A stretch of DNA of 64,000 nt from Oculina patagonica (lineage: Eukaryota): NCBI RefSeq assembly GCF_052425735.1, contig NC_135759.1:33170001-33234000 (forward strand), written 5' to 3'. Made by a program: the position numbers and the translations under genes. Positions 17,799 through 53,534 of this stretch are shown one piece after another. The stretch's first letter is position 1; each line of letters starts with the position of its first letter. The notes below the pieces were generated by a model. The model was given only the letters and a program-made list of their open reading frames with translations, had not been told where the DNA came from and did no database searches.

Positions 17799-18010
17799 TT
17801 ACAGGTAGTCGTTCACGTTCATCGTATCACCAGTCTCTCGACTCATCTCATTGGTTATTGATGGCGCTGGCTTTTCCTGGTCAGCGGCTGTTGGTGGAGA
17901 GTCGAAGACCTGCGATGCTGTTGATGTGTCGGTGGGTGGACTGGGGTCGATTGAGTTGGAGACCTGTGGTTCATCGGCTTGAGGTATGGTAGTCTGTGCA
18001 GCGGGTTGGT
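17799..18010 (-). CDS. Terminal exon of the Arg-rich gene, encoding an acidic Pro/Thr/Ser-rich tail
   Basis: Acceptor (T)8AG at 18011-18020, phase 1, matching the donor at 18471. Translates as DQPAAQTTIPQADEPQVSNSIDPSPPTDTSTASQVFDSPPTAADQEKPAPSITNEMSRETGDTMNVNDYL*. Confidence 0.75.
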
Positions 18011-21000
18011 CTAAAAAAAATAGACGGTAATTTTAAATCAAAAGCCACTCGTAAGCCAGCGAAAGCTTTTCTTTGGAGGGAATAAATAATTGGTAGGTAA
18101 ACAAACCCTTTAATCTACAGAGCCCTAAATTTTTTAGCCTTTGCAAACTGGCGACAATTTGATTTCGAGAATTTTCTCCTGGCGTATGTCTAGTTACTCG
18201 GTAACCACACCGAAAACTGGCACTGCGGGCTCATATTAGTTGTTTAACGAAGAATAGTTTACAGTGCATGTACCACATGCATGAGAACTGCTCAAATTTC
18301 ATGTTTTGAAGACATTGAACAAGCTGCACCACACCGGAAGTACTACTTGTTGGATTTCACTTGAAAACGCGCTGTATAATTTCATCCAAAGACTCAAACG
18401 TTGTATGAGAAGCGCATTTATACTGTGGTAAGGCTTGAATGAGGAGGTAACGAAGATATATCACTACTTACCTCTAAATTTTCGGAGACGAAATTTGCCA
18501 CGACCCTTTCTGCGTATTTTTCTCCACCCCTTTCTTCCTCGCACCTTAGCCTTTCCGTACCGAAGCCGGATTCGTCGAAGACGTCCGCGTAAAACAGCGC
18601 GCAGCTTGTTGCAGCAGTTTCTCACGCGTCGCCACATTCGTCCGTAGCGTATCTGCAAGGTTCCTCCTCTGGATGGCACATACCGCCAGCGCCTTCCGAT
18701 GCGGATTCCAAATCGACGTCCTCGCAGCGTGACCCTTCTTCGCCGTTTTCGATACATTATAGTCCATCTGCCGCGCCATCTCTTGACGTATCTCCACCTG
18801 CCTCCGTACTTGAGTCGCATTTTCGCGTAGGTCTTTCTTCGTCTAAAACCCTTCCATGTCTTTTTGAGCCAGATCCTTGGTCGTCCTCCCCGGAAGCGGA
18901 TTGGTCGTCCTCTTCGCTTGTAGCGCACCATCAAGCGTCCTTTGCGGGGGTAGATCCAGCGTAGTTTACCGCGGATGAACATCTTCAAACGACGAACAAC
19001 ATGTTTAACAAGCTTCCAAGGCCGCGTGCCGTAGCGTACCCATACTCCTCTGCTTCGGATTCTGTGAGTTGAACATAAAAGACGAATTTTAAGGACTGCC
19101 ACCAGTGGCATTCTTTAACTACTTCACGTCCCGTACTGCAGTTTAAAACGCCCTCAGTAACAATTTGAACAGCGGTCCTTACATTTCAGATACTCATTGA
19201 TATTCTTCAACCCCCCACCCCCTCCCCCCCCAACCTTCCCAGAAAAGCGATTTTGTTTAATTTGAGCTCAACATCCTCCGTTTGCTATACAGTAATGGCG
19301 GGTTCAAATGAAGATATAGTTTCTTGTTGAGTCCCAAGTTCGAGGTATTGAGTTGCCTTACATTCTGCGAATTTAGCGGTACATCAAGATAATAAGTCGA
19401 TAATTGCCCCATCCTTGTCACCTTTCTAAAAATATGGCGATAATTTAAAGAAAATTTGATATCGCGTTTTTACAATCGGCCAAGTCCCATGGTTAGCTGA
19501 AGAAATATGAAATGACGTTTGCAGTGCGTCTTGTGGCAGGTACTATATAAAATTAACCAAAAGTAACTAGTAATACGTGACTCGCAGGGCCTCGCGAAGC
19601 TCTGGGTTGGGGAGGGGTGGGGGGTGTTATAAATAAGGAGTGGATTATTTGAAGTTGAACATTTATTGAATTGTACATATTCAATTTTCCACAGTAGGCA
19701 GAAAGATATATTTGTTAGAAATTTCAACGGGCATGGCCGCGACACCCTCGTTCCCAGGGTCTACTCCGCTTTGAAGATGGTGGCTTTTTCTGGTTCGTAA
19801 AGAGGTATAAAGCGTTGGGAAGCGCAGGCTATTTTCAAAATCATCGACAAATTATTGGATAGTCGCATTTTGGACATTTATTTGATGGCATTAAAAAAAA
19901 AAGAAGAAGAACGAACAGCAGGAGGATTCGAAGCCTCCGCCCGCGCGCCCCTGATGGCGATGAAAGATTTATAGCCTGAATAGGCGTTGAGGGAGTATTA
20001 TGTGGAGATCAATGTTATTTTAATCCGAAAAGAAAAACGATAAAAATGAAAGGCTCAGAATTCGAACCCACAAAAAAAAAAGAAAAAAAAAACGTACCCT
20101 AGCCGGATTCGAACCCCCGACCTCAGTTCCGAAGATCTGATTTCAAGTTCGACGCCTTACCATTAGGCCACCAGCGCGCGGCGGACGTGTGACGTCATTT
20201 CCGCCACACACCAAGCTCACAAATATATATATATATATATATAGAAATATATATGACCGTAAACTCCACACGAGATTTCATCCCGCCTGATCCCTTTGAG
20301 GGACAAAATTATACACCCCGCTACGCTCGGCCTTCGGCTCTCGCTTCGCGAGGAATAATGGTAGACCAAGTTAAATTATTTATTTTACTTTTAAATAGCA
20401 AACATAACAACGAGACCCTCCCGGGGGGTGAGGGGGCACGTTCCTTTGAAAATTTCCTTTTTCCCCAAAAGTACTTTGTCGATTTGTGTGGTCCCTGCTC
20501 CCTAAAATATCAGAATTACAGCTTTTGTCCGCGTATTCCCAGCTTATTTTCCTTTTGTTCCCTTGTTCCTGATTATTTTTGGCCATGTTCTCTTGTTACC
20601 TAAGACGCCCGGGAGGGGTTCAACAACTGTGTTAGATTTCCTTACCTAAGGCCATAGTACTTGGTACCAACACGGAACCTTAGTCGCCCTCCTCTCCTTC
20701 GCACTCTTTTGAACTTTCTACCATATCTGAAAACAATTCTGCCATTGCGCTGTCCGTATCGGCGTCGACGTCTTCGTCTTTTACGCCTGAACCTTCGCCA
20801 GTACCGTCTTAGCCTCTTTTGTCGTCTTCTTCTTCTTGCACGGCGACCACGGCGTGTCGAAGGACGTTTCCATTTTTTCTTATAAAAGAATCTTAATTTT
20901 CCATAGATGAATCGGATTGGTCTGGTCCTCCTACCGTAAACGACGCGAAGGGTCTTTCCAACTCGTCTCACGACTCTGTACCGTCCCTTGACACGAACCC

Positions 21001-24000
21001 TTACTCTGTTGACTCGGACTCGGTACCATCTTCTTCCACGGCGATAGCGGAATACGCCGCGTCGGATTCTAGTGAGAAAGAGAAAATCAGGAGGTTTTAG
21101 TCACTTGTTAGATTCTACCAGAAGTTGATAATGCTAATTTTATAGACAACTGACACTATTCGATTCGGAATCTCAAGCCGCCAATATTTTTGATGCCATT
21201 GCATTTGCTGTTAATCAGAGTTAGAGCTGTCCTGACCGACCTAAAGAAAAGTGGTTACAAAGCCAACCCGAGCAGAAACGAGCTGTCAGTGATTGTTCTG
21301 ATTGGCTGAGTTGGCACATTTCAAAAATGGCAAATCATTTTCAAACTTTATCTCGAGTTTTTTGTTGTTGCATGCTTGAGAAACATGCAATGCTTTGAGC
21401 GGAGTTTGGAGTTAAGATGAGCTTAATTAAACTTGTGTAGCCGGCTTGGCACAGCTTCAAGTAGAGGACAATTTTAAAACTCTGACACAAAAATGGCTCT
21501 TTGTTAAGTAGAGAATAACATACTGAAGTGGCTGGTTATGAAGAAGAATTCAATGACCGTTGTATCATGAGGTAGATTGCGAAAATTAAGTTCGCATTGC
21601 TTGTCATTTGCAATTTCATCTTTAGCTTTGTGTAATCTGCTTTAATCAAGGCCAATTACAAAAAGAAACACAATGACAAAAAATGCCGTGAACCAAAAAA
21701 AGCTAATTCTTACCTTAAACTACATGTCCTTCGTCCATAGCGGAAAAAGAACTTTCCACGCCTTCGGTACACTAGTCTGTAACGTCTTCCAACCCGTATA
21801 CGCATTACACCGTAACGCCTTCGCCTGGACCGTCTTCCGCGTCGCCAAGGCCGTCGCCTGGGTCTTACACGTCTGCGCCGTCTGATACGTACCCAACGCC
21901 GTCCTCTACGCGAATAGATTCCTCTTTTCGTGACGCGGATTCCTCTGTACCTCCTTCCAATACGGATCACGGGTTTTCTTCCGCGGATTGTTATCCTTCT
22001 CCATCTTTTCCTCAAGCGCGTGTAGAGGCGGTACTTCTTCGTCGGTACGCGTCGCCAAGCTCTCTTAAAATAGTAATATAACCGGCCGCGTTTGTACCTG
22101 TTGTAAGATGAAACAAAAAACATCAGAGATGAAATAAGAAACTGATAGCAAAGGTAAACAGCGTACATACTATTACTGTAGTAGCCCATGTAGCAAGCGT
22201 TCCCGTACGTCCCGTGCGAATATGCACTGAGTTTTCCCGAATGAACACTGAGTTTTCAACATTTTAGCCACGCGATTATTACTTTAATTTATATTGTTGG
22301 CGTGTAAAATAACTTTTACAAAATCTTTTCCAAAAAACAGGGTTTATCAAAAAACATTTATTAATCAGAAAAAAAAAACAGTGATAGATGTTGACGATTC
22401 ATTGCGCGAGATACGCATTAAATAACGACTAAGCCCACCCCACCACTCCCCAAATAAATTTTGGTAGCCTGTTACAGGCAATTGGTTAGTTGAGGAGCAG
22501 CGCAAAGAACGGCAAGTGAAAAAAAAGACGAGGGTTAGTCGAAGAGACGCCCCACAATACCGTCGTTCTTCGCGCTAATCGCGTTCTTTGAACTTCTCCC
22601 CAGCTAACGGAACGCCTGCAACAGACTAAATTTTGGTTTCCACAGCTACGCAAGACAGAGCTGTTTCTTTTATGTTATTTTCCTAGCTGTATATTACACT
22701 TGTGAGCATCTAATCTATATCGCCAATGTCTCATATAATAAAACGAAAATAAGCAGATTGGTCATGACTGAGGAAGTCTACGAACGACAAACGTGAAAAA
22801 AGTTGGCCGAGATGTCGCTCCTTTGGCTTAAAAAAAGTTTTCCTCGCAACATGCGAGAAAGAATGTCTGAAGAAGCATTTATTATTTTATTGTTTTTGAA
22901 GAGAATGCATTTTAACCAGTAAAGGGAACTCTGTCTTTTCTATTACCTGATTCTCCTTCGGCGACCTCCAAGGCGGAATGTTAATTTACCCTTCCACCTG
23001 AAGATTTTCCTTGTCTTTTTGCGGTAGTAGATCTTGAACGGGCTGCTGCGACGTCTGTATCGCCGTATACGTCTAATTCTGCGCCTGTTTCGTCGTTGAT
23101 AACGCCTAATACGTCGTATCTTTCGCCTGTAGCGTCGGTATTTACGTCTGCGTACGCGGCGACCTCTTCGTCCCTTGCGGCGTCTGTACACGATTCGTCT
23201 CCACTTCCTTCTGATACGATACACTGGCCTTCCGCGTATGAACCTGAATGGTCGGTATTTTCGTCCTATGCGGACTCTGATCTTGCCTCTATATCGTCGT
23301 GTAGAACACCATCGCCGTCTGATGAGGAACTGTGGTCGACGTTTGACGTAGCTCCATCGTCTTCCAACCCGGACTACGATTCTTCCTCTTCGATATCTAG
23401 AAAACACCAGGAGACATAGATTTAACATTTTTATAATCACTGAAAACAAAGGTTGTCAAGTGGTATTTGAAATTATTTGTATTTTGGACCTTTATATTGT
23501 TTTACTTTCTAGGTCCGCCCCGCTTCAGAGGTAAGAGAATGCACTTGAAAATTTGCTTGTGCTTATCTCGTGAACTCTTCTTTAATGCCAAAAATTCTGT
23601 CGTGTTTCACAAAAGCATATATAATATATCCATCAAAGCTAAACCAATCATAAGTGCAAAAGTTACAAACAAAGAAGCGTCAAAAAATTGTGATCTTAAT
23701 TTAACTCTCATGTTACGCATTTGATAACACTTCAGATTTTTTTGGTTTTGTCTCTTTGTTGTATTTTCTTTGCTCCCATGTGAACTGGGTTGCAATTCAA
23801 ACGTTTTCCTTTGGGTGATATTTCTATAGTGCATTGAGATGAAAGAGAGAAATTAACCTTACCTGATAAGTCTAAATCGACGTTTGAAACGCATCACAAA
23901 TCGCCTTCCTCTCCTGTAAATCTTTCTGAATCCTCTTCTGTACCACACACGCATCACGCATCCTCGTCTACCGCGCCTTCCTCTTCGCCTTCGTCGACGT

Positions 24001-27000
24001 CGTCGTCTGATCCTCCTCTTTCGTCGACGTGTCCTTCTTCGTCTTCGCCTTCGTCGTCTTCTTCGTATGGTCCTGCGTGTCCTTGGTCTTCTCCAACGCC
24101 CCTTGTGGTATAAACGAACTCTGCCGCCTATTATGCGCAGCCGACGCCTTCCTTTTCTAAATCGGATGCGCGGTTTGCCACGGTAATATCGCAGTAATCT
24201 CCAACGCCGACCAAAGCGGAATTTTATTGGCTTTCTTCTCAACCATCGCCATCTTCTTCCATATTGGATTCCAATCTTGCCATTGATGTACCTAATGATA
24301 AAGACGTCGTATGTCAGTGCAAGAGGCATTTGGCAAATGGAGGGGGTGCTGCTCCCCGGACTAAAATTTCTCATGCTTGGCCCCTCGACTTTAAAAGGCG
24401 AATTTGTATATGTTCCACAAATCGCTATATAAGTTTAAAAAATAAATTAAAGCTATGACTGCCTTTCTTTCGTTGAAGAACATTGATGACCTTGTAAGCT
24501 CGTTGGCTGGCTACAATTTTTAAAGATATAACTTTTAAAAGCTCTGCCAAGAGTCTTTTACGGAATCAGTTGTTTGACTGATGATTGTGTTTTTTAATTC
24601 CAATCTTAGATACTCATTTCCCAGTGTTTTCAAAAAACAAAGGACAAACTTACTATGCAAAGAATTTTTCGTAACAGATTTTTTTCCAAATTCGTCTTAA
24701 TTTTTTTGTTTTGCAAAGTCGTTCGTCTAATTATTTTTTATGCAAATTATTCTTGTTACCTGACTCTTCTCCATCTACGCTTGATTCGACATCTCAGGTA
24801 TCTACCTCGGCGGTAAACTCGGATCCATCTTCGGTAATATCTAAAACGAAGGATGTTACGTCGTGTTATACGTCGTTTGCGTCGTCGATATCTACGCCGC
24901 CGCCGTCTCACGCGTCGCCTTCGTCGTCGCCTGCGTCTACGTCTCCATATCTTCCTCCGTCTCGGTTTTCGTGGCTTTCTCCTCAATACCACCCAGCGCC
25001 TACCGTAAAGTACCCTGAGTCGTCCTCTCGTTAATCTGAATGGTCTGTATCCACGCCTGAAGCGAAGCACAAGCCTTCCGCGACGTATCCTTATAAATCT
25101 CCATCGCCTATATCCCACGCGGACCTTGAAACGTCGTGTGATTCGACGTATTATGCGTCGTCTTCCTTTGTATGTTACTCGGAAGTATCGTCCTCTATGA
25201 TATCTGGTTAAAGTTCAAGAAAATATTAAATAAGAAAGGTTAAGTCAACACCCTGATGTCCGACGAAGAAAAACAGAACTCACGAGAACTTGAATAATTG
25301 CTTTATAGGGACTATGTCATGGGTATTTGGCAGTTTTTTGGTCTTAACTGTTCTAAAATAAGTGGTAGGCAGTTTTACCAATGGAAAACAATGTCTTTGA
25401 ACATTTTACAAAAAAACAACCTTTTTGGTGGAATAGAAATCAAACTTTTTAAGGCGCGCGGAAACAACTTGAAAACGGTGGCTAACGTTTTCAAATTGCA
25501 ATCCATTTCCTTCCGAGCCATCCGCAGCCAAACGCACTTTAAAACAGTTTTAGTGCTCTAAAAAAGCAATTGTTAATAAAAATGGACCATTATTTTTAGG
25601 TTTCCTACGACACATATATAAATTTGGACTTTTCAAAAATTTGTTAACCTCCGTGACATGTTCACTTTAATTTTCCCAGAGTCAAATAATGCAAATATAA
25701 GAATGGCTTTGAACGGGCTAACATAGCTATTAAGAACATCTTTAAAGTTATGAACGATCTTTTATTCCCGTTCAACCAATTTCAACGAATTTTTTAAAGG
25801 AATTTCAGTTTGTGTTAAAGAGCATTCGACTTACTTGAACGTTATCCATCGACGACCGTAACGCATCCTATAACCACCACGCCATCTCACAATCGACCTC
25901 CAACGCCTGTGGTACTTGAAAAGAAGCACAGGGCGTCTGCGTCGGCGTATGTAGCGCCGTCTACGTCTTCGACGACGTCGCTGCAATCGCCGTCGCCAAC
26001 GTTGTCGTCTTTTGCGCCCTCTTCTTCGTCCATAACGTCCTTTTCGTCTTCTCCTTGGTTTTCTTCTTCTCCTTGGTCTTGGCCTTCGTTTTGGCTTTGG
26101 TTTAACCGTTTCGAAATGTGATGGGATAAGCATCTGCACTAGCCCTCGGCGGATAGAAATCTTCATGGTTTTACGGCCAACTCGGACAGCTAACATTCGC
26201 CTCTTTTGTGTCACCCACCTCCAGCGGCGATGGTAAAGCACTTGCACTTTACCTCTAATCCTGGGCATTCTGTACCACCTTCTTCCTCTACGGATGCTAA
26301 GAACACCACGGCGGCACCTATATAATAATAAAACATTGAATAAACGAATTGACAAGGGAGGGGAGAGTTCCGCCTTGAGTTCCAACCCTTATTCTTTGAT
26401 GTACAAAGAATAGAGAAGACGCGTTAAGAGGTAACCTTTTTTATATACCTTTCATAATAATAGATGGCAACCCTTTCACACACATACAGTTGATCAAAAC
26501 AATGCATTCATTTCCATACCATTTCCTTAAAGCACTTTGATGCTTTAGCCGTTAGATGCGTATTTTATAAGACCTGAATTTAATGACAGTTTACCTTACC
26601 CTTTTCTGTACTTAAACTGGTGAAATAGGGTACTCCTAGCTTTCGGGCAAAGCCTCCTCTTATAGTTTATCATAGGGAGTATACTTCCGGGATTCTGCGC
26701 TGTTGCACATGTCTTGCTTGATAAGTTTGGTTAACTTGGAATTTCGCCCAAAAAATAACACCAATTTAAACTTGTAGGTCGTGTATTCAGTGAAAGCAAA
26801 CAAATAAGGTTGTTTGTATGTTTCTACATATTTATTACTTTTGTTTTTGCCCCTTTTGTTTTCTTTCGCTAGGTTGTTGATTTTTAATTTCTGAAATATT
26901 TTCAATTGAAACTGTTGCGCTTACATATTATAAATTCAAATATAACTTGTAAAATTAAATTTACTTACAATTAAGATGCTAGTCAATCTTAAACTGAGCT

Positions 27001-30000
27001 AAGTGAGTGACTTTTATGTACAAAACAGCTTTTAACGGTGTAGTTTAATTTTATTATTTATGGTTTTGTGTAGAGGGAGTTCAATAATTGATGTTTCCAA
27101 GGAGATCAATGCCGAAAATCAAGAACAACGTAATAGTTGCTTTACCGAGTTCACAACACGCTGTCACAATTAGGCTGGAACAGTAAAAATTGCGTTGTTT
27201 ATATTTACCTTATTATACCGTATCGGAACCTCAGGTAGCGTCCGACTCGATAAGCCTTCATCCATCGCCCTCTGTACCGGAGTCGAAGCACGCTAATGCC
27301 TTTTCGTCTCAAGCGTATTCTTCGTCTCTTTCCATATCGTCTGCGCCTGATTCTTCTTCGTCTAAACCTTCGCATTCGCCTTCGCCTCCTGATCTTTCTT
27401 CTACGCCGTCTGCGTCTTCTTCGCTGTCGCCTCTTTCGTCGCCGGATTCGTTTGATTCTCTTTCGCCGTCTTCGCCTTCGTCGTCGCAGTCTTCTTCTTC
27501 GTCGTCTTATTCTCCTGCGTCGTGACACTCTGCGACGCCTTCGTTTCACGCGGTACCAACGTCTTCGTCGATATATCCTAATGAGTCCCTTTCTAAAGCT
27601 TATTAACCTGGATTTCCTACCATATCGCACGCGGAGTTTTCGTCTGCCCACAGTTATTCTTCGCCATTTATTTCCGTACCTTACTTGAAGGCGTTTGTTG
27701 GGGCGTCTTAGTGTAACCCATCTTCTCTTGCGGAATATCCTCACTTTTCCAAAGCCACATCTTAAAATTATCAATAACAAAAGTTACTTTTAGGGAGTTA
27801 ATATCAAATACAAGTAACATTCTTTGCTCAAGTAGAAAATAGAACTTAACATTCTGAAATCAAGCAACGCAAATTGGCTGAACTATTTAGTAGAGCTTGA
27901 CGTTCTATAATTATTCCCGAGTTGCTGAGTTACCATTTATAACTGACGATGATCTCTGCTAATCAGGTTGAGAGAGTTACATTTAAAATTTAATTATTGC
28001 GTCATAGAGCCTGCAAGGGTTTTTCCCCGAACAGCCGAGATAATCTTATAAGTGACAGATCGCCCATTTCTGAACAGGAAGTAGAAAAAGGACCAAAAGA
28101 CATGCTAAATAGTGAAATAGAAAGGTAAGGTTAGTTAGAGAGTGTCTCAAAAATCCCAAGCAGCAGAAGCCGTTGGATTATGCAGACGTACCGTCGTACC
28201 ACTGTAAATCCTTATTATTTAATTCTTTCAATTTACCTGATTATTCGAGGTCTTCGTCTAAATCGGAAGATCAACCTATTGCGTCTTCTGAAAACACGTC
28301 TCCACTTCTTTCCGAAATAGATTCTTACTACACTTCGTCGCCGTCGCTTTCGGATTCTTCGTCTGCGTCGTCGTCGTCTTCTCCTGCGTCTTCTTCTTCG
28401 CCTAACTCGTCGCCTCTTCCTCCTGTTCCTTCTTCTTGCTCGTCGTAACTTTCGTCTTCGCAATCTTATTCTTAACCTTTGTCGTCTCCTTCTCCTTCTC
28501 AGCCGTCTGAGGCGTCTCAAGCGTTTCAGTCGATTCAACCGTCGCCGTCGTGTCAGCCAAAGCCGTCTTCTTTTCCTTGTTCTCCTTAAATATCCTTTCC
28601 TTCGTCGCACTCTTATTCTTCTCCTTCTAATACGCAACCTAAATCGTCCTCGGCGGATCGACACCTTTCTGTAACGTTTTCTTATGCGTACCACAAATTT
28701 ACGGCGTCTGTAAACAACTCGTCTCCATCGTCTACCATAGCGCATCTTCATACGATTTTTACGTCGAAGTTTGAACCATCTTCGCCTGTATCCCACACTC
28801 CATCGGCCGCGACGACATCTGCAAACGAAAAAAGGGATACACACTATGAGAAGCTTAATTTAATTTGAGAGCAACGTATTAAGTTAAGTTACTCTTAACA
28901 CTTAGAATTTTTTTTCAGTTTTAAAGCTACATATTTTTTTAACTCCACAGAAAATATCCAAACATTAGTCAAGCGGTTTACATAGACTTGCAAACTGGTC
29001 AAAACACGGGCAATAGACGAATCAGGAGGTTTTAAAAGATTAATTACTTTTTTTTTTTTAGATCTTAAAATACGGTTTGAGTATCTAAAAGGTGAAGAAA
29101 ATTAGCACAGGGAAAGTGAATTCGAGGAAAAGCTGCGTTTGACATTACAGAAATCACCGAAATGTTACGAGCATTGAAGCCAGCATACAATACCTTTCAC
29201 TGTGAAGTTTGTCTTAAAATAAATGGCCTAAATTATTTGAATACATTCTTTCCACTTCCAGATGACTTTTAGAGCCTCCTTGACATTGTTGGTATACAAG
29301 GTATACAAAAAAGCATACCTTTAAAATTTATATTATAAGAGTTCTGGGCGTATTTTGTTTCAACGACGTTTTTCAGTGGGGTTATTTTCGGGGTAATGGG
29401 GTAGGGGGCACTTGTTATCGGAAGGAATTGTGCATTTAAAGTGTTTGGGTTTATATTTTGGAAGGAATGCCAATTCTCATCTTATTAGCGGAAGGATTTG
29501 GAATTATAATGGGAATTTTATGCTATTCTAGTAAAACTTCTTTTGAAATTCTTCTTTGCTTAAGAAACGTTTTAGCAAGGCTTATAGTTTTTCCAACATT
29601 GTGCGTGGGTTCACAACTTGATCAAAATTCTCTGATATAGACCTTTCACCCGGTTAATAAGAACCCAGTTAAACTATAAAAAAGATGTTCCTACCTAATC
29701 TTTCTTAGTCCTTTCCTGGTTCGGAATCGCAAGTATCCCTTGCGTCGGAAAACTCTTCTCCACTTTCGTCTATACCAGAATCGTAACCTGTATCGACGAC
29801 GTCTTCTTAGTCGTCGTCTTCTTCTTTTTCCTCCTCTCCACACCTTTCTTCTCCTGCGACGTCTCTTTATTCTGCGTCTTATTCGTCGCCTGTACTTCCT
29901 TCTTACCCTTCTTCTACGCCGTCTCCTGCGCCTAAGATATCGTCGTCGTTTTCGTTTAATTCTCCTTCGTCGCCTCCTTATTCGTCGCCGCCGCCTTCTT

Positions 30001-39000: not shown

Positions 39001-42000
39001 CTTTTCGTGGGACCTGTATTTTCAAAGCTAAGAGGCCGCTACATTCCAACGCTGTCAGATAATAGTTCAGAGGTGAGCGATTACTTCTTTGCGAGCCGCG
39101 AAGCCGTATATTCCATTCTCTCTTACCCCAGTAAATTGTTGGAAAAACCTAGCAACTGTTCCACCACGGATAGTATAAAGACTGCGTTTCTTGCAAATTC
39201 AACAGCAACAGCAGCTATCAAGTCTGGGCCTGGCTAGCCACTGTATTTTCTGCCCATATACGCTGAACTATTAGTAATGCCATTCGTATCGTAATTACTG
39301 TTTCCTTTTTTTGAAAAACTTTCTCACCTGATTGTTCTATAGCCTCTTCTCCTACGAATTACCAGTCTGCGTCCAAAGCGATATACCTTCATCCATCTAC
39401 GCCCATACCGGAAGCTCATTACGCAACGGCGACGTCTTCTTCGTCGTCGTCTTCGCCTTCTGCGCCTTCTCCTGCGCCTTCGCCTTCTTCGTCGCCTTCT
39501 TCTCTTCTTTCGGCGTCTTTGTCTCCTTCTTGAGCGCCGCCTTCTCTTCCTTCTATATCTACGTCTCTTCCTTATTATTCTTCTCCTTCGCCTTCTGTTA
39601 TATCGCCGTATGCGTCGTCGACGCTTCAGTATTTTCCAGCGTCGTCTTATGCGCCATCTAATTATTCCGCGACGGATCTTAAAACGTCGATATTTCTTTC
39701 TGTATTTAATGACCAGCCTCTTTCGGCGAATCGTTATTCTTCTCCATGTTCTTCCGACACGGAATTGTATTCGTCTTTTGATATTGCGTATGGTTGTCCA
39801 TTTTCTTCCCACCTTGATACGGACCACGCGTCGTCTGATACTAGTAAAAAAAAGTAAAAGTGGAATATGATTGTTAGTGGGAGCCCTATTAAATCATTAT
39901 GCGAACTGTTGGTGATGCTTCGCTTTAATTTAAATGTTTGCAGGATAATAACCCCAACCCTGCCTCCTGTCTCCTAAAGACCTCTTCGTCCTTAGAAAAT
40001 TTCTCATAGCACCATTTTAATAGATTCAAGCCAATATTTGGCATGGGCACAGACTCCTATGTGAAGCAGGTTTTTTGGAAGGCTTAGAGACGAAAACTTT
40101 CAACAGGGAGGTAGATGTATGTTTTGCATTTTTGGTGGGGTCGAGGCATGTCCAGTGTAATCACTGGGCGGGAGATTCTTCATCAGGTTATCATTTTTGG
40201 TGTTTTTGGATTTAGTACACACATGTACAAGAGCACCCGTATAAACGCATGTATAGCCCCACTCGTGGATAAGCTATTAACAGACTGTGTTGGTGAAATG
40301 CTTCTGGAAGGAAAGTGAGCGTGCTAGTGTTTTTGGTGCTGTTTAGGAAAAGGTAATATTATGTACGCCCTTTATCTCTGGCAATAACATCTTTAACATT
40401 CATGTTCGCGTTACATTTACTATCTTACATCACAACAAGCGAGAAAAGAGCGAAGGCGCGACAATCTTAGGGTGCGTTCCTCTGAGATGGAATCAAAGTG
40501 CATCAAAGAAACCGATAACCCACTTTAGGTTTACACCATAATCCGAGTGATCTTGGATCATTGACCTGATCCGGAGCATTCCAAAAGAACGCACTCTTAA
40601 ATTACATTTTGCGAGAAAAGAATGCAAAGGGGCGACTAAAGAACAACAGGAGAAGGGCGGCTATCCGAAAAGCCAAAGTAAATGGCCAAAACTATATGAG
40701 GTGTAGGATACTGGTGAGTACCTCTTCTGATCCTCTGGTAATATTGGGAATAGTAAACTATTTTGACTGAAACTCTCTTGGTTGAAGGGTGTTTGAGACA
40801 ACCCCTTCTAAAGACATTTAAATCACTGACTTACTAGATTCTTCTGTATCCTCTTCGTGTGCGGAATCTAAGGACTCGCCCTCTGCGGTACACTTTTCGC
40901 CATCTATTTCGGTAACGGAAACGCATTACACAACGACGTCGGGATCTACGTCTTCGTCGCCTTCGTCGCCTCCTTCTGCGCCGTCGGCGTCGTCGACGTC
41001 GCCTTCGTCGTCTCTTCCTCTTTCTTCTTCGCCTCAGCGCTTTTCTTCTTCGTCGGTATCGTTTACGTTGCCGCCTTCGTACCCTTCGCAAATATCTTCT
41101 TCGTTTCCTTCTAATTCTGCGCCTTCTTCTGATTCTTCTTCGTCTTGAGGTTCTTCGTCGTCTCCTTAGCGTTTGCCATCGCTTTCTGTATCGGTACAGC
41201 ACTCTTCCTCTCCTGATTCTAGCTATTCTAATTTTCCTCATGAAGCGGAAACCGAAGCCTCGTCTGCCGTACGTCCGTAATGTACGCCACACTTTCCTTA
41301 CACGAACTTGGAATAGGCGAGTAGTCGTTCTTAGGACACGTCTTCTTCGCATGTAATAAACTATCGGTTTACGTCTATAGAATCTAAAAAAGGGTTAAAG
41401 AAGAAAACAATTTTAGCATTGAATTCGCTTGAATAAAATTCCATGTTGTTACTGCAAGATGGCTGCTATGTTCTTTAAGCACTTTTGAAATTTCTACTGG
41501 GAGAAACAGAAGCTTTACTGTGCTCGTTTTTTGAAAGTTTTATTTTTGTCGTGGCAGCTCATTGGAGAGCACATCAAGTAGTGTCTTTAGCAAGGCCGAA
41601 AGCAAAAAAATCGGCCCGATAGAAGTTAAGACAAGATGTTTACAATTGGGTTCAGCCTTCATTTCAACCATCTGCAGACATCCGTACTCCTTGAAGGGTT
41701 TCGTCGTTTGGAACCATCATTTTGAAGTTTGTATACCGTGAATAGTATGACCTAGTTCATTGAAATCGCCGGCTTATAACAAACCTCAGACCGTCTTAAG
41801 GATATTTTCATCACTTGTGCAAAAAAGATAGCGTCATAGTCTTACCTGACATATCCAACTCTTCGCCCAACGCGGAACACTAATTTGTTTCCTCTGCGAA
41901 GAAGTTTCCTCCAGCGACGATAGAATCTGAACCGTAAGACACACCTTCGGCGTCTTCTTTTCTGTATTCTTCTTCTCCTTCTTCTTCGTCTTCTTCTCAC

Positions 42001-45000
42001 CCTTCGCCGTTTTCGTCTTCTTGCCCTTCTCCTCCTCCTTCGTTTTCTTCTCCTTGTTCTTCTCCTCCTTCTTCTTCGCATTTTTCTTCGTCGCCGTCGC
42101 CTTGCCTTTCGTCCTCGGTATCGTCTCCTTCTGATAATCCTCCAGCGTTTACGCACCCGGTATCTCAGCAGGCCACGGTAGAATCTCAAAGGTCTTCTCT
42201 TTCGTCCGAAGCGGATGAAAAATCGTCGACGGTACCGTATCGCACTTCGCCATTTCTTTCCTACACGGATTCTGACTGGGTAACGTCTCTTTATCCAGCG
42301 TCGTCCATAACGGATATAAGTTATGCCTCTCGTGAATCTAAAACGAGAAAACAATAACAAACAGGAAAAATAATCACACACAGATTTTACTGAACCCTGT
42401 CAGTTTAGCTTCCTCTTGATGATTGCCAGACATACATCCCTGTTGGACTGTCAGTTGCACATTTTAAAAATCTACAGTCTCAACTCTTTATTATCAGCGC
42501 ACGATTAATCGATCTGAAAGTTCGCAAGAGTTTAGAAACCTGCTCATCAAACTTATAAAAAACACTCGTCGACTCTAGTGAACATTTTTACCAGGTTCTA
42601 GATAGTGCACGATTTGAGAGCGCATGTGAGTTAACGGTCAAATGAGGGCGAGATTTCAAACTTTAGCCTTATCCTCGTTAAATCTTAGCCAGTACCCAGT
42701 TAGAGCCTTACCTGATAATCCTCGTCACCCTTCCGAGACGTATCCTTAATACGCGTCCCCTCCTGTAGACAGGATACCAGCGGCGTCCACGGCGAACACG
42801 TATCACGCATCTGCGTAACCGTCGTCGCTTTACTCTCCTTCGTCGTCGTCGCCTTCTGTTATACCTTCTTATTCGCCTCTTTCGCCTTCTTCGTCTTCTT
42901 CTTCGTCTTCTCTTTATTCTTCGCCGTCGTCTTGCCTTTCTATTTATTCTTCTTCTGATAATTTTCCATCCTCGTTTAACGCGTACGCGCAATCTTCCTC
43001 TGTAGAATCGTATTCTTCGAATTCGCCGGCCGTATCTTATCACTAATCCACGTCCCCGTTTTCTTGGACGTATCCAGCGTCTGCCGATTCTGACCCGGAG
43101 ACGATAATTCGGTTTGCGGATTCGGATCCATCTTCTTCTCGTCCACCTGACTCTAAGTACACCACGACGATAACTGAAAAACGACAGACAATAGATATAT
43201 TGTTATTTCTCACTACATAAAAGGGTATGTTTTATCTAAAATAAATTTACTGATTAGTTTTAGGATATTCTCTTTTTAATTCTTACCATTTTTAACATGT
43301 AAAACACCTCTATGTTGCTGCATTACGAAAAACATATCTTCCTAGAGGAGTAGCCTATCCGTCATCTTAACGATTCCCGGGTGACATGTTTTGGACTAAA
43401 TAAGTTAACCCTTTTTTACTGTCTGCTTTGCTTTTTAATGATTTGGTCTAAAATTCAAATGTTGTGAAGACCAGACTAAAAAGAGAATTTTGTTATGCGT
43501 GTGCTCTTCACCTTAGCTTATTTCAGTCATATCACCACGCCTCATGTCATCCATTATCTACCATAACAAAGCTTGCTCTCCACCCTACGGTCTTTCTGGT
43601 ACGGACCTCGCTGTGCTCAATTCGTAATACCAAAGCCATAGGCCTAGATTCCTCCGGTACGGCCCACAGACTTGGTTTATAAGATATATATATATATATA
43701 TATATATCTTATTAACCAAGCGTAAGTGCGGTACTGGGAGAGTAACATCCGAGGTCTTGACAGTACGCACAAAAAAACAAGGGCTGATATTTTCTCGCTT
43801 AGTTAATAAGAGATTTATTACACGACTCAACATAGTTAGTAAATCCCACTACTAACTATGCACTGAAAAAGATTTTTAGCAGATATAGGATAAAAAGAAC
43901 AGGATTCTAGCAGGGGACCAACCGGTTATTTCTGTCGGGAAAGAATTCCATATTAATTAAAATGTTGGTTTACAAACTAATAAAAAGGTTGAGAGGGTTA
44001 TCAATTTTTCCCTTTTGTAAACCAAAAAATAGATTGTCGAAAAATGAACTGTTGGCCAAAAAGCGAAGCTTCGAGGGCAACTGTGAAATTTTGAGTACAA
44101 TCTTTCAGCCAAGGGCTGAATATCCTCCAATATACCAGCTAGCCAGAAAGGGGTTTATTTATTTTATAACCCTCCGATTAATTTCTACATCGCGCTTTAT
44201 CGCCAGTAAATTTATAGGAAAAAACCTACGTAATAAACCCGGCGTAACAGTGGTTGAAACAAATGTAAGTTGCATTGGTTTACGTGATATTTTAACTCTG
44301 TGATTTCATTAAGAGTTAGAATTGAATAAGGTGACTTCATTCGTTTTTTTTGTGCTTGCCTTCAAATTCAGGCGACGGATATCAAATCGGACGGGGTATA
44401 TTCGCTAATACCCGTCGTCCGATTTTGTACCACGTGATGCGTTTTGTCCAATGGGTGCGCGCAAAAATTAATGGGTGGGTTATAATTAGAGAATATTGGC
44501 CCGGCAATTGAGCAATCTGATTGGTTCCTTTTAGTTATTGGCCCTCTGACTTCTTTGGTCGTGTAGTAAGTCTTTAATTTGCTGTTAATCGCTTCAGGAT
44601 TTTTTTTAAGTGAGAGTAGAAGAGATTTCAACTGAACGAGAAGTCACTTTCTGGCAGTTCTAACACCGAATCAAGAAATTAAAGTAAATTATTTCTTACC
44701 TTAGATACTTGTATTTCCTTCCGAAACGGAAAACCAAACGCTTTCCTCGTTTGAACACTCTTCTCCATCTTCGCCTGAACCGGAAACGGAGCACGCAGCG
44801 GCGCCTTCTTCTTAAACGCTTTCTGCGTCGTCTGCGTAGTCGTCTTTGTCGTCTCCTTCGTCGTCTTATCTTTCTTCTGTATCGTCTTCTCTTTCTTCTC
44901 AATCTCCTCCTCCGTCTCCTTTTCCTTCCTCGTCTTCTGTAATAGACCCTCTTCCAGCGTCTTCCGATCCTCATTCTAACCCTTCTGCCAATTCTCAGCT

Positions 45001-48000
45001 TTCTGTTCACTCTTCTGTATCTCACTCGCAAGGACTTACCGACCCGTTTGACGTATCTCCACCTTTTTCCGATCCAGACACGGATCTTTCTAACCACTTT
45101 GCGCACGACTCTTCTTCCAATTCTCACCATTCCTCGTATCCACCTGGATGAAGCAACCACAGAAAACCAGGGAATAAATATCAATTTCAGTGTTATAAAT
45201 CAAAGAAATATCTGGTTTTAAATCCATCGTCTTTGCATTCTGGTACAACTATTCTACCAAAAAATTTCAAAGCCACTAAGAGTTAACCAACTGTGAGTAA
45301 TATAACCTTGAAATGGTGAATGTATTATAACGAGACATGTATGAAGTACTCTATCGTGTTTAACTTACAAACAAACTTTCTCTTGCATCAAAATCGTAAT
45401 ATAGTATCACGCTTGCCAGCTAAAGTATTACTGAATTTTTCGATGCTTTTGGTGTCATGTTAATTTAGCAAATCACTACCCTGAATAGCTACATCATTTT
45501 CTTCAACTGAAAAAAACAAGCAAACGTTCCTTACCTAAATGGCTGCCAGCGTTTTCTTACTCGAATTCTTAGTCTTCCACGTTTTCTGTACACCTTTCTC
45601 CATCTACGAAGATATCGGAATCTCAACACACATCTACCGCGCCGCCTTCGACGTCGTCGACGTCTTCTGCGACGTCTTACGCGCCGTTTTCGCCGCCTCT
45701 GTCGCCGTCGTCTTCGTCGTCTTCTTCTCTTTCTTCTTATCTGTCTTCGTCGACGCTTTCTCCGCCTTGTTCTTCGTTTTCTCAGGACACGCTTTCTATA
45801 CCTTCTTCTCCTATACTTTCGTCTTCTCCTTCGGTATATAATTCGTCTCCATCGTTTTCCTCTGTAAACTCTCACTCGTCCTCGCGTTAACCTGATGGGT
45901 CTTCCTCTTCGGCCTTTCCTGGTGTAATACAGTCTGCGACCATATCGCCGTAGTCTTCGCCAACGTCGCCCAACCAGTACACGTATGCGTCTTGTTGGTT
46001 TCTTCAGTGAGAGCCATCTACGTCTACGCCAGATATAAAGCCTTCTTCGTATGTATCTTTTGATTAAGAAAGAGATAGCAGATTTCTTACAATAACGAAA
46101 CTGTGAAAGAACTTATGTCTTTTAGTCCTAAGAGTGATAGTCTATTTAATGCCAAATCATCAGAACCCTTCCGAGTCGCCATTACACTATTTTCAAGTTC
46201 AAAATGAATAGAATAATCTTTCAGAAATAGTTTTCTAAAGATTAATAGTATTTATAGTTTACACAGTTTATTGAAATGGTGACTTGGATAAAGTGAAAAC
46301 ACAGTTTCTTTTACTCATTTTGAACTCTAAAATGGTCCCATGACGACTCCGAAACGTCGTTTAATGTAATCGCTGATTTTTACATGCTTATGTATCATTT
46401 AGCCTTTGCTGATAATCACCAGATTGTTAGGAGAAACCAAACTATCATGAAAATAAAGGAATGATGATGTTGGAATTCCCTCGAAAGAAATAATATTTTT
46501 TTTGCAATGCGCAGTGCTTTAATATATTGAGTAAAAATTTCGCTTGGGGCTTATTTCCACAAAAAAGTAAATTTACATTGACTAATAATGGAATTAGTCC
46601 CAACGTACCTTACTCTTACAAATTTCCTGCGCACACGCATCACCAGCCGACCTCGCCTTCTATACACTCGTCTCAATCGACGGCGATACCTAATACGCAG
46701 CACACATCGTGTTCGCCTTCTTCGCTTTGTTCTCCTGCGCCTTATTCTTCGTCTTCGTCTTCTTCGTCTCCTTCGTCGTCGTCTTCTTCTCCTTCTTCTT
46801 CGTCGCCTTCTTCTTCGTCGTCGTCTTTTCTTTTTCCTTCGCAGCTTTCTTCTCCTGTTGTATCTCCGTCGTCTTGTTATTCTCTTCCATGTTCGTTTAT
46901 AGCGCAACCTTATTCTCCTTCTTGTTATTCGCACCACTCTGTATTTTCTTCTGTAGCGGACCCTCAGTTTACCGCGATAAAACTTGGGCCTCTTCCATGC
47001 TAAACCAACTCGTATCTGTAGGCGTCTCTTGACTGACCGGTAGCGTCCCTTTCGTCCTATTTTCACGCGTCGTCCTCGTAATCTAACGATTCAAACCGAA
47101 TATCGTATTAGCTTGTTATTGAATAATGGGAGGCGCGGTGGCCTAATGGTTAGAGCGCCGGATTCCGGATCGAGTGGTCCGAGTTCGAGCCCCGGTCAGG
47201 GTCACTTGTGTTGTGTTCTTGGGCAAGACACTTTACTCTCATAGTGCCTCTCTCCACCCAGGTGTATAAATGGGTACCGGCGACATAATGCTGGTGGGGG
47301 GGGGAACCCTGCAATGGACTAGCATCCCATTCAGGGGGGAGTAGAAATATTCCTAGTCGCTTAATGCTACGGAAACCGGGACAAGCTCCGGCAGTGTGGG
47401 CCGCTTGGCTCGTGGCTTCTCCGTTTCCTCCTTTGTTATTGAATAAACGATTTATATTTTCCCCTGGGGGCTTAACCCTGCTTAAGTTTTTTGGCAGATT
47501 ATGATGTTATTGATTATGACTAATGTGTTATTCATTCATTCGTCTATTCGTTCGTCTTCATATTTATTTTATTCTCTGTGCTATAACTTAGGAGCTAGAT
47601 CACACTTTTAGGTACCTTCGTAACGAAAAAACTGACCTTTAAAATCAAACGAAACATCAAAAATATTTTTTCAATGAGTCAGGTAGCAGGCTTATTCTTT
47701 TTACACAATTTGTAAGATGACAAACTAACAGATAACCTGGATTTTATATAAACTAAAAAAATTAAATGGTTAGATGCAGATATACAACAAAAACAATTAT
47801 AAATTAGAATAAGTGGTAGCAGTTTTACAGCTGTAAAGGCTTTCAGCACTGATGGAATCCGCTTAAGGGTTGAGCATTACATAGATAAGGCAATCGACTT
47901 TCCTTGAATTTTTTCAGGATGGAAAATTTGTCCACAAAGTCGATGCCTTCCACATTGTATTCTCCCTTTGAGTTATTTGTAAATGTCGGGAAGTGAATAT

Positions 48001-48262
48001 CTCATATGTGGTCTTTTTTAAGCGTGCATTAACAACTGAAAAGAAAAACTGGAAAGCCTACACCTGGATACCCTATCAGTCAACTTCACTTTACTTTAGG
48101 GGGTATCTACTGATTTTCCAACGCAGTTATTTTAAAGAGAAGAAATATGTCTTAAAACCCGTAACATGAGAAGCTAGTAATTTTTGGAGGCGGAAAAACA
48201 AGTCTAGATTTGAGAGCAGACGGACGCACAATCACTTTTGGAAACTTTATCGAAACATACAT

Positions 48263-48299
<37 letters not shown>

Positions 48300-48310
48300 A
48301 CGACAGATGC

Positions 48311-48345
<35 letters not shown>

Positions 48346-51300
48346 TAGGCAGACAGATAGGCAGACACATATCTTAGCAGAATCTTAAAACTACAGCTCA
48401 AACAGTAGTGAAACTTTCCATATCCCTCACGATCGATACCTATTGTTTCCTGAAATCGACCAGCTTTTGATGAAGACACAAATGGAAATAATTTGAATAC
48501 AAAATCACCTAGCATTCTTATTACCTCCATAGTTTCCATCTCCTTCCTATTCTGATGTAAAAGCCTCGACGTCGTCTTATGACTCGTTTCCAACGACGAC
48601 CATACCGGTAACGCATCACGCAAACTGATCGCTTTCGTCGCCTTGTTATTTTTCTACGCCTTCTTCGTCTACGTCTTCGTCTTCTTCTTTTTCGTCGTCG
48701 ACGTCGTCGTTTTCGTCGTCGACGTTTTCTTCGCCTTCGTCTTCTTTTTTGTTTTCTTCTTCGTCTTCTGATTCGCCTTCTCCTTCTCGATATCCTTCGC
48801 CTTCGTCCCCGCCTAATTCTTCTCCATGTTTTTCGGATTCGCAGTCTTATTCGCCCTCTGAATATCCCTATCTTTCTGTACCGTCTGCCTCGTCGTATGC
48901 ATAATCTTCTGCGACGAACTCTTGCATTTTTCCAACGCTTTCCATACCTGATCTTCACTCTGTTTCGTAGCTTACGGATTCTACGCCATCTCTTTCCTCG
49001 CCTCTTCACGTACAAGAGACCTTTGCGATACCTGGTTTAAAATAAAAAAAGAGCGTTGGAAAACTTAAAAAGGAAGTAACATATTGTCAAGGTGATTTAT
49101 GTGTCATCAATTAAAAAAAGTAAAGAATTCTTCCAACTTTTGGTAAGCGAAAATGCTTCAATAATAGTATTTATTACGCTTATTTCGATAAGCATAGTGA
49201 ACCCCATAAGGGTCTGTAAATCAGTGAACAAGATTTGCTTGGAGAAAACATAACCAAAATGCACGTCGAATGTAGTAAATAATGTTTACTTTATTGAGAG
49301 ATTATAAACGATAATTTAACAAACGTCACGACAAACGGCAACTAGTGAGAGCTAGCGTGATTATATCTTGGCCGTATTATCAATTAACCCAGTTACAATT
49401 ATTACCTAAATCGTCTGTAAGATTTCCTGTATCGGAAGACAAGTTTTCTCCCTCTTCGGATCACTCTCCTCCAGCGACGACCATAACGGAAACGTATGAC
49501 GCAACGGCGGCGCCTTCTTCTCCTTCGTCTTCGCCGGCGCTTCCTTCTTCGTATCTTTCTCCTTCGACGTCTTCGTCGTCTTCGTCGCCTTCGTCGCCTT
49601 CTTGCTCTTCGTCTCTTGCGTCTTCTTCGCCTGGCTTTATTCCTCCTGGATCTTCTTCGCCTTCGCCTTCGTCGTTTTATCTTGATCCAGCGTCGTTTGT
49701 ATTTAATTCTGATTCGCCTTCCCAGTCTGATCACTCTGACTTTCTTCATGTACCGCAATTTCAGGTATCTGCCCGCCCTGCTCACATATCTCCATCTCCG
49801 GCCAAATCTCACCATCACTGTCCTCCTAATGGGGACCCAACGCCTACTCCTACCTACTCTTGCTCTTCCTCTTCGGAATCTGTAAAAACAGGAAAAGCCA
49901 CAGTTCTTGAGACCTAGCAAATTCAGAACTGTTGATAACTAGTCAACGCGCAAGACAAATTAATTTGGCCCAGACAAATTAATTTACGGTTTTTAAGCGG
50001 AGAGCATTATCCGAAAAAATCCGATCTTTTGAGTATCCAGCTGAAGACCTGAAGACCTTTCAAAGTGGCTTTGGCTCCCACTTTTCTTCAACAAGATGCA
50101 AAAACACCATGCACGCAGAGAAAAAATAAAGTTAATTACTGTAAATGCTACAATGCTTCAAAAAACTGAATTTTACGAATCCTATGTCGCGAATGTAAGC
50201 AACAGTTGCTGCAAAGGTATCTTTTAAAGTCAGTTAAAATCCTACTAGACTGCAAGACAGTCATATATTGTTCACGAACATGCACGCTCGGCCTTGTAGC
50301 CCACACCCCGTTGCATGCTTTTAACGCTTCAATTTATGGACAAGAGCGACTGTTATACAGACTAAAATCCTAAAAATCAAAGAGACCAGATCGTTCATCA
50401 GTGAGGCTGCTTATCTCTGGTTAATGAGCTTCTGGAAAAGAAAACTAGTAAGAGTATTGTTTTTTCCCTGAAAGGGGTACCCCCAGTATTTTGTCATGCT
50501 TGCACTAGGGCAGAGGGAGACAATGTGAAAGAAAAGTGCTTTATTCAACGACGCAACAACCTCCGTCAAGGTTCCAACATGGGCTTTATAGGCCATCACG
50601 CCTCCTATCAAACATATTATTGCAATCTTTTCCTGTGGATTCCATTTCTTATGCCACCTATTTCACTGTTTTATTGCAAATTAAATATTGAAAATTTATC
50701 ATTGGTGCATCTTATTTAATTCTGCTAATCCAATAACCGCCGGTGTTCCTTTCCGCTTCTATTGTTGTTACTCCTGTGAGTTTTGAATCTAAATAAAATA
50801 TTAAGCGTGTTTTATTTCCAGAAATCTGTTTTGCATGGAAGTTTATCCAAAAATGCTTTTAGAGCCATCGTTTTACGAGAAATTATCAAGGCCGGAGTAA
50901 GGTTTTTAGGAGCCAGCCGCTATTTCTTTAAGTGATTTTACCGGGAATAGTACATAAAATTTCCACAGTCTGCAACCTTAACAAAAGCTAAACTAGAACA
51001 CACCTCACTGATATATAACGACGCCCATAAAGGAATCTCCAGTTCCTTCCAACTCTGCGAATGGGTCTGAAGCGGCCAGCATATTTGAAACGTATCAATG
51101 AACGTCGAAGTCGCTTTCGTCGTCGTCGTAATCTTCGCCTTCGTTTGCGCATTCTACGTCGTCTTCGCCTTCGTATTCTTCGTCTTCGTCTTCGTCTTCG
51201 CCGCCGTCTTACACGTCGTTTCCTCGAAATTCGCCTTCGTCGTCCACGTCGTCCTGACATAGAAATAGTATCAGGAAATACTGTGCGATGCCGGTTATAA

Positions 51301-51891: not shown

Positions 51892-51924
<33 letters not shown>

Positions 51925-53503: not shown

Positions 53504-53534
<31 letters not shown>

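Follow-up and report, generated by a model that had tools for sequence, protein, structure and literature searches.

Tandem arrays of symmetric, duplicated exons are known from genes for repetitive structural proteins, examples being the 54-bp exons of fibrillar collagens, tropoelastin, the super-repeats of titin and nebulin, and mucin-type repeats. Cationic β-hairpin and Arg/Trp-rich antimicrobial peptides, which include tachyplesin, arenicin, protegrin and lactoferricin-type motifs, and the Macrostomum-type adhesive proteins, large cationic proteins of repeat type that serve flatworms in temporary adhesion, provide further points of reference for the locus described here. The locus lies in a window of 64,000 nucleotides from the stony coral Oculina patagonica (assembly GCF_052425735.1, contig NC_135759.1, positions 33,170,001 to 33,234,000) and comprises an array of arginine-rich exons on the minus strand (window positions 20646-49879). 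An earlier note on this DNA had treated the array alone. The analysis establishes with very high confidence, for gene structure and evolutionary history together, that the array makes up the 3′ half of a single, very large minus-strand gene that is transcribed, that tandem duplication of exons produced the array prior to the separation of at least two coral lineages, and that purifying selection has since kept each exon individually.

The array consists of 25 consecutive exons whose outer borders, 49879 and 20646, coincide exactly with those first noted. Exon lengths range from 384 to 618 nt (12,336 nt in total), each divisible by 3, and the 24 intervening introns span 374-1,526 nt. Every exon is in phase 2 at both ends and is flanked by an AG acceptor and a GT donor. 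Typically an exon is preceded by a pyrimidine tract and AG and ends in AG/GTAAG; the tract is weak at five of the array acceptors. Most exons (22 of 25) terminate in AG, the remaining three ending in TA, CG and AA, and the junction codons specify Arg on 22 occasions and Ser, Tyr and Lys once each. At exon entry the first base past the acceptor AG completes an AGR codon, followed by [FYIC]RRG. Splicing of all 25 exons produces 4,112 codons without a stop. Thus, the proposals in the earlier note that the region comprises 25 symmetric phase-2 exons and that most junctions read AG/R were borne out, and the order that it described within each exon, from a hairpin region through poly-Arg to a segment of the type CV[ML]RFRY..RRW..VYRRG..L.FR, holds. 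The array exons are as follows.

Array exon 1: 49406-49879, minus strand, 474 nt, phase 2/2; orthologue at L017:13648-14247.
Array exon 2: 48525-49031, minus strand, 507 nt.
Array exon 3: 46609-47082, minus strand, 474 nt; weak pyrimidine tract at the acceptor.
Array exon 4: 45535-46056, minus strand, 522 nt.
Array exon 5: 44700-45143, minus strand, 444 nt; modelled as 8 strands, a helix on poly-Arg and 4 strands.
Array exon 6: 42712-43173, minus strand, 462 nt; the exon 5/6 junction codon is AGT (Ser).
Array exon 7: 41846-42337, minus strand, 492 nt; donor junction in the RNA contig.
Array exon 8: 40835-41383, minus strand, 549 nt; ends TA/GTAAGT with a Tyr junction codon; both junctions in the RNA contig.
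Array exon 9: 39328-39840, minus strand, 513 nt; both junctions in the RNA contig.
Array exon 10: 38399-38878, minus strand, 480 nt; both junctions in the RNA contig.
Array exon 11: 36922-37368, minus strand, 447 nt; ends in CG; acceptor junction in the RNA contig.
Array exon 12: 35800-36270, minus strand, 471 nt.
Array exon 13: 34936-35415, minus strand, 480 nt.
Array exon 14: 33474-33992, minus strand, 519 nt.
Array exon 15: 32303-32863, minus strand, 561 nt.
Array exon 16: 31144-31761, minus strand, 618 nt; acceptor picked by motif, with a weak pyrimidine tract.
Array exon 17: 29695-30270, minus strand, 576 nt.
Array exon 18: 28237-28818, minus strand, 582 nt.
Array exon 19: 27209-27760, minus strand, 552 nt.
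Array exon 20: 25835-26317, minus strand, 483 nt; ends in AA; carries the sole Glu of the array, in a P/K-rich insert common to the orthologue.
Array exon 21: 24760-25203, minus strand, 444 nt.
Array exon 22: 23863-24291, minus strand, 429 nt.
Array exon 23: 22947-23396, minus strand, 450 nt.
Array exon 24: 21714-22097, minus strand, 384 nt.
Array exon 25: 20646-21068, minus strand, 423 nt; 11 unnamed homologue clusters at 65-78% identity.

Splicing of the array was assessed in sequencing runs. A 7,099-nt contig from run X1, assembled at a k-mer depth of 478, matched the window with 0 mismatches and joined positions 36922-37368, 38399-38878, 39328-39840, 40835-41383 and 41846-42339. The stretches that the contig skips carry GT..AG ends on the minus strand, and X1 therefore represents RNA. 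Four introns and five exons were confirmed exactly as predicted, including the odd TA/GTAAGT donor; the other 20 array junctions are predicted from sequence. Frame-preserving skipping of the symmetric exons is only a possibility: the one transcript contig, which has all five consecutive exons, contains no GT..AG exon-skipping joint, and contigs drop rare isoforms. Joints between non-adjacent positions that also emerged from the X1 search were read as assembly joins, as they fall in repeats that encode poly-Arg, are short-sided and do not show GT..AG ends. Further upstream in the gene, the exon 54367-54876 was present in RNA-like runs of six studies under three organism labels, a distribution which fits routine adult-polyp expression better than it does a testis-only gene. 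Serine/proline-rich open reading frames on the plus strand were rejected as the coding sequence: the GT..AG introns are on the minus strand, the minus-strand Arg frame is open in every exon, and differences by codon position follow the order 3 > 1 > 2.

Arginine constitutes 50.8% and lysine 7.9% of the array product which contains no Asp and a single Glu, giving a net charge of approximately +2,390 across 4,087 residues with a longest Arg run of 27. CGA makes up 26% of the Arg codons. Open segments with 35-54% Arg run along the minus strand from 18.5 kb to 63.5 kb of the window. Each array exon encodes approximately eight β strands and then, after a poly-Arg linker 26-92 residues long, approximately four more. 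The structural unit is a module of ~12 strands and ~100 aa with poly-Arg on both sides that is cut at a turn by each intron. The suggestion that the module joins the 3′ part of exon n to the 5′ part of exon n+1, with the intron within it, agrees with an AlphaFold2 model of array exon 5 which displayed 8 strands, a helix across the poly-Arg and 4 strands (predicted local distance difference test score, pLDDT, 79.1; predicted template modelling score, pTM, 0.38). The model of the exon at 54353-54874 in the 5′ half of the gene comprised 16 strands connected by two-residue turns (pLDDT 73.5; pTM 0.54). Both models were built with natural alignments; at such low pTM values they are credible as to the strand pattern but not as to packing in three dimensions. 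An 18-residue period is evident in the hairpin regions (z = 13 for hydrophobic residues, 5 for Gly and 4.8 for Trp), together with a 9-residue sub-period. In the conserved C-terminal part of the exons, hydrophobic or aromatic residues occupy positions 2, 4 and 6; 10, 13 and 14; 20, 22 and 24; and 28 and 31, with Arg between them and Gly or Asn at the turns. The strands are strictly amphipathic in an h-R-h-R-h pattern, where h is a hydrophobic residue, with Val, Ile, Phe, Tyr and Trp on one face and Arg on the other. Conserved Cys residues number about one per module at most.

The homology of the exons was examined by comparison with shuffled sequences, a control proposed in the earlier note. 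The last 31 aa of the 25 exons, aligned without gaps, gave a mean column entropy of 1.75 bits compared to 2.70 ± 0.02 bits when residues were shuffled within each sequence (z = −43.8), and the first 40 aa likewise deviated strongly (z = −22.8). None of 2,000 shuffles reached the observed entropy. The real exons therefore align far better than composition-shuffled controls, and an artefact of chance or composition was rejected. Nevertheless, the copies have diverged extensively: in the best-conserved 31 codons the paralogous exons share 46% nucleotide identity, with a proportion of synonymous differences of ~0.80, which is saturated, and a proportion of nonsynonymous differences of 0.46. Exon-exon matches at the DNA level are 66-75% identical and lie mostly within the poly-Arg-coding part. 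The 24 array introns have in common one trivial high-scoring segment pair of 26 bp. These observations match the description of introns without obvious similarity alongside exons that are diverged in DNA yet keep their motif. A recent satellite-like repeat was rejected given the unrelated introns, the saturated paralogues, and the detection of only short codon-level repeats by Tandem Repeats Finder.

Comparison with another coral provided a measure of the age of the array. The contig ena:ERZ25067546:ctg58796 (loci L017, L018, L020 and L021) contains a one-to-one orthologue for each of exons 1-23, and their order is unchanged. The 25 window exons and 23 orthologues were placed, without their linkers, in a maximum-likelihood tree; each of the 23 orthologues was sister to its window exon with support of at least 98/95, and the deeper nodes were unresolved. 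The whole array therefore is older than the split of the two coral lineages. Moreover, concerted evolution is not apparent because every compared exon has its own orthologue. Across exons 1-23 the ratio of nonsynonymous to synonymous substitution rates (dN/dS, or omega; Nei-Gojobori method) was 0.37 for the modules (bootstrap 0.34-0.41) and 0.16 for the linkers at dS values of 0.58-0.74. Insertions and deletions between orthologous linkers amounted to 0-6 residues per linker. Orthologue differences at codon positions 1, 2 and 3 were 0.21, 0.18 and 0.30, respectively, and six orthologous introns that were compared can no longer be aligned. A more distant contig (L016) gave an omega of 0.17 for exons 1-3 at saturated dS. 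Overall, the one-to-one orthologues, the dN/dS values, the tree and the saturated paralogues substantiate the view, first put forward in the earlier note, of an old array held by selection on the protein pattern.

Coding sequence of the same kind runs upstream of the array to ~101.2 kb in window numbering. If there is a single transcript, the whole gene is estimated at ~65 exons over ~83 kb that encode roughly 8,500 aa. The parts of the gene that flank the array in the window are as follows.

5′-half portion within the window: 52163-63501, minus strand; whole-module hairpin exons (~170 aa) and poly-Arg micro-exons in alternation, each in phase 1.
Transition exon directly upstream of the array: 51004-51253, minus strand; poly-Arg at its phase-1 entry, the four-strand C-terminal part at its phase-2 exit; orthologues in L016 and L017.
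Exon 26: 18472-19061, minus strand; hairpin repeats only; phase 2 in, phase 1 out.
Last coding exon: 17799-18010, minus strand; 70-aa acidic Pro/Thr/Ser-rich tail and TAA stop; copy present in the tandem paralogue.

The 5′ half (window 50991-63541 and onward; L005-L008) differs in layout from the array, being in phase 1 throughout until 51004-51253 switches to the phase-2 layout. Alignment of the 5′ modules with the array modules by hhalign returned a probability of 79% and an E value of 1.5e-5, a score that may be helped by composition. A unit of 2.3-2.4 kb, introns included, has recently been duplicated in tandem in the 5′ half at 93-98% identity (57216-59205 versus 59539-61609) and consists of a hairpin exon and a micro-exon. 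This half of the gene is still growing by unit duplication. In the micro-exon of the copy (60893-60977) the Arg frame shifts partway; either phase-1 splicing would break the frame or the assembly is in error at this point. A partial tandem paralogue at 113147-118581 in window numbering (G000:C2:33283147-33288581; L010) contains equivalents of exons 20 (3′ part) to 26 and of the acidic tail exon. With a dS of 0.54 and an omega of 0.30, the paralogue is, or was, constrained. A separate small contig (G000:C1888:300-3765) repeats exons 22-25 at equal or near-equal scores and is probably an uncollapsed haplotype copy. Searches of the coral's own genome confined the gene family to the locus, the partial tandem paralogue and this contig, and a profile search of the genome with one 5′ exon matched only the exon itself.

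Other features of the window were noted. Open reading frame fragments on the plus strand at 3882-14000, for example 11658-11933, resemble SET-domain methyltransferases of the SETD3/Rubisco-LSMT type as judged by motifs recognized by eye. A 52-bp tandem repeat occupies 7436-7750 (6.1 copies, 97% identity), and an (ACAG)n microsatellite of ~28 copies is located at 48255-48367 in the intron that separates array exons 2 and 3. An intronic stretch at 37780-38090 reached very high depth in several runs (up to ~1,600 in run X19) from several organisms and is probably a high-copy transposon fragment. Positions 53670-53861, within an intron of the 5′ half of the gene, comprise 192 N.

Relatives of the protein were sought by profile, sequence and structure. 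No Pfam family matched six of the exons at E ≤ 1, including no protamine, histone H1 or RNA-binding domain, and a sequence search of the PDB produced no match. Foldseek comparison with the PDB gave template modelling (TM) scores of ≤0.18 which is noise level, the best Z in a wide VIA-align search was 4.6 and thus under the noise level of that method, and the ESM Atlas yielded no relative by features and TM scores of ≤0.35 by shape. The known β-hairpin repeat families, namely MORN, cell-wall/choline-binding, YD, Kelch and WD40, did not match by profile or fold. The sole fold match above noise was with an uncharacterised 889-aa protein in the AlphaFold DB (A0A3M6UD74; Foldseek E = 2.3e-4, probability 0.96, 18% identity over 208 columns, TM only 0.17). 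Its accession block is presumably that of a stony coral proteome, and the entry may be a partial model of the same family. Word-indexed searches with exon 54353-54874 and with exon 25 retrieved 11 clusters apiece, the identities ranging over 56-83%, and an exhaustive HMMER search of 1.84 billion representative proteins with a profile of exon 54353-54874 recovered 11 proteins only. All protein matches are short, unnamed, single-exon open reading frames from ENA or Logan contigs, none being an annotated protein. A homologue search limited to residues 1-80 of exon 17 found none at E ≤ 0.001, and full-text literature searches revealed no description of such a protein. Thus, the family seems to have escaped gene annotation altogether; prokaryote-style gene callers catch it merely as isolated single-exon open reading frames in coral-associated metagenome contigs.

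The product would be a polycation of the beads-on-a-string type that binds a polyanion by multivalent electrostatic and cation-π contacts and condenses or glues it into a dense phase. The poly-Arg linkers would bind the polyanion, with the modules contributing further charge through their Arg faces. The hydrophobic and aromatic faces would need to be buried by pairing, stacking or a partner which may confer cohesion, and the single conserved Cys of a module could cross-link the protein. As the poly-Arg linkers are the most constrained part of the array, they probably are not disposable spacers. A polyanion-binding scaffold in this general sense is probable. The overall reading that is favored, with a likelihood put just short of even, is a polycation scaffold in a structural or adhesive material that is secreted or packed into an organelle, for example spirocyst threads, cnidocyst matrix or gland-cell glue, in preference to chromatin; the secretory or cnidocyst setting taken by itself is suggested more tentatively. 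The C-terminal Pro/Thr/Ser-rich acidic tail looks like an O-glycosylated extracellular linker of mucin-like character. The spirocyst tubules of a scleractinian have markedly eosinophilic content (PMC5363355). The preference for a secreted or organelle-packed material is based on this eosinophilic content together with the apparently routine adult expression, the mucin-like acidic tail, and the roughly one conserved Cys per module. A more specific proposal, which must be viewed as doubtful, is that stony corals possess an undescribed class of giant polycation (~8,500 aa, ~50% Arg) that acts as the main basic component of a specialised material, for instance the eosinophilic, basic content of spirocyst threads, a material long familiar but uncharacterised at the molecular level, or else as a non-histone, non-protamine condenser of DNA, in both cases by charge-driven condensation with a polyanion.

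Several observations weigh against a secreted or organelle-packed scaffold. Scans of 101.2-113.2 kb and of the sequence upstream of the partial paralogue revealed neither a first exon nor a signal peptide, and secretion is therefore only putative. Poly-Arg is replete with proprotein-convertase sites, and passage of an intact chain through the secretory pathway is not obvious. Among the RNA-like runs, X1 is the only one shown to be RNA, the nature of the others being guessed. The helix predicted across poly-Arg may be a habit of the modelling. The link to spirocysts combines histology from one paper with inference.

The alternative that survives best, itself unlikely, is a condenser of sperm chromatin: a giant, non-canonical sperm nuclear basic protein that would replace histones, with poly-Arg neutralising DNA phosphates and Cys cross-linking as in protamines. 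The composition of the array (51% Arg, practically no acidic residues with Asp 0 and Glu 1, and Arg runs up to 27) is what such a protein would display, the linkers are the most constrained part (omega 0.16), and poly-Arg is a nuclear import signal that would survive outside the secretory pathway, in keeping with the signal peptide not found in the 101.2-113.2 kb scans. However, protamines and protamine-like proteins are small or derived from H1, whereas the coral protein extends to thousands of residues with aromatic-rich β modules and the six exons searched lack a Pfam match to protamine or H1. Furthermore, the acidic P/T/S tail is without parallel among such proteins, and a seasonal transcript restricted to males would not be expected to leave an exon in RNA-like runs of adult material, as was seen for six studies.

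Rather less probable is a defence polyprotein, in which a secreted precursor would be cut at poly-Arg by convertases to release some 45 cationic, amphipathic, Arg/Trp-rich β-sheet peptides that attack microbial membranes, with the acidic tail as a neutralising pro-piece. Poly-basic linkers indeed are classic cleavage sites, the strands are amphipathic (h-R-h-R-h) with RRW-type motifs, and the C-terminal tail is acidic. Nevertheless, a tail of 70 aa is too small to neutralise a charge of +2,390, and modules of ~100 aa with 12 strands are not hairpins of 17-25 aa locked by disulfides. The modules also are full of RR and RxxR sites and would be shredded along with the linkers. Unlike disposable spacers, the linkers are strongly conserved in length and sequence, with 0-6 indel residues at a dS of ~0.7, and the scans of 101.2-113.2 kb did not disclose the signal peptide that a secreted precursor would have.

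An intracellular RNA-binding, nucleolar or condensate-forming protein of somatic cells is improbable. Sequences rich in Arg and aromatic residues drive binding to nucleic acids as well as phase separation, expression is apparently broad, and the failure to find a signal peptide in the same interval (101.2-113.2 kb) would be expected of a protein that stays within the cell. Against this, poly-Arg of so extreme a kind is toxic to the somatic nuclei of animals elsewhere, as established for Arg-rich dipeptide repeats, Pfam detected no RNA-binding domain, and the size and ordered β modules are unlike those of known RNA-binding proteins. Finally, a repetitive locus that is transcribed but, for example through ribosome stalling on poly-Arg, not productively translated, its open frame being a by-product, is very remote: long poly-basic runs with CGA as 26% of the Arg codons can stall ribosomes (mainly in yeast) and protein evidence is nil, but the 4,112 open codons across 25 spliced exons, the dN/dS of 0.16-0.37, the codon-position order 3 > 1 > 2, exons that align while introns do not, and the one-to-one retention of all 23 compared exons in another species stand against it. 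As a separate observation on the reading frame, the +1 frame of AGA and CGA codons in poly-Arg-coding parts, such as 60849-60977 and 51098-51208, reads as long runs of Glu and Asp; a shift by one base therefore would turn the polycation into a polyanion, and there was no sign of that frame in use.

The locus can be placed alongside the described systems as follows. With protamines and protamine-like proteins the product shares ~50% Arg, Arg runs, a near absence of acidic residues, and scattered Cys and Tyr, but it is ~100 times larger, is built of ordered, aromatic-rich β modules, is encoded by many exons and lacks a Pfam match. The strands that alternate hydrophobic residues with Arg, the tight Gly turns and the RRW-like motifs recall tachyplesin, arenicin and protegrin. 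These peptides, however, consist of one hairpin with 2-4 Cys, whereas the coral modules possess 12-16 strands and at most one Cys, which precludes a disulfide lock, and are part of a giant polyprotein with conserved linkers in which no signal peptide was found. The Macrostomum-type adhesive proteins also are very large, repetitive and rich in Lys and Arg, and are thought to act via charge in a secreted glue. They have no sequence relation to the coral protein and differ in repeat chemistry and taxon, with secretion of the coral protein only inferred. If the partner polyanion and the cell type are found, the gene could reveal what forms the basic matrix of an organelle or glue in cnidarians, or point to a new form of DNA packing, and it offers a natural test of cellular translation and handling of extreme poly-Arg.

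At the level of the gene, the array resembles those of collagen, tropoelastin and titin in its single shared phase, exon lengths divisible by three, homologous exons separated by unrelated introns, and growth by unit duplication. In contrast to those arrays, the repeated unit in the coral is offset from the module, such that introns cut the module at a turn and the linker lies inside the exon. The coral gene additionally has a second layout, in which whole-module exons alternate with phase-1 poly-Arg micro-exons, and the presence of two exon layouts for one domain-linker pattern makes this single gene a clean natural case. The coral array also differs in the lack of concerted evolution, each exon having its own orthologue. 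Twenty-five ancient exon copies of this kind, with exons 1-23 compared, are useful for understanding how exon arrays grow and then freeze. Overall, the architecture of the gene is a variant of a well-known kind, whereas the protein family is undescribed and its composition is extreme.

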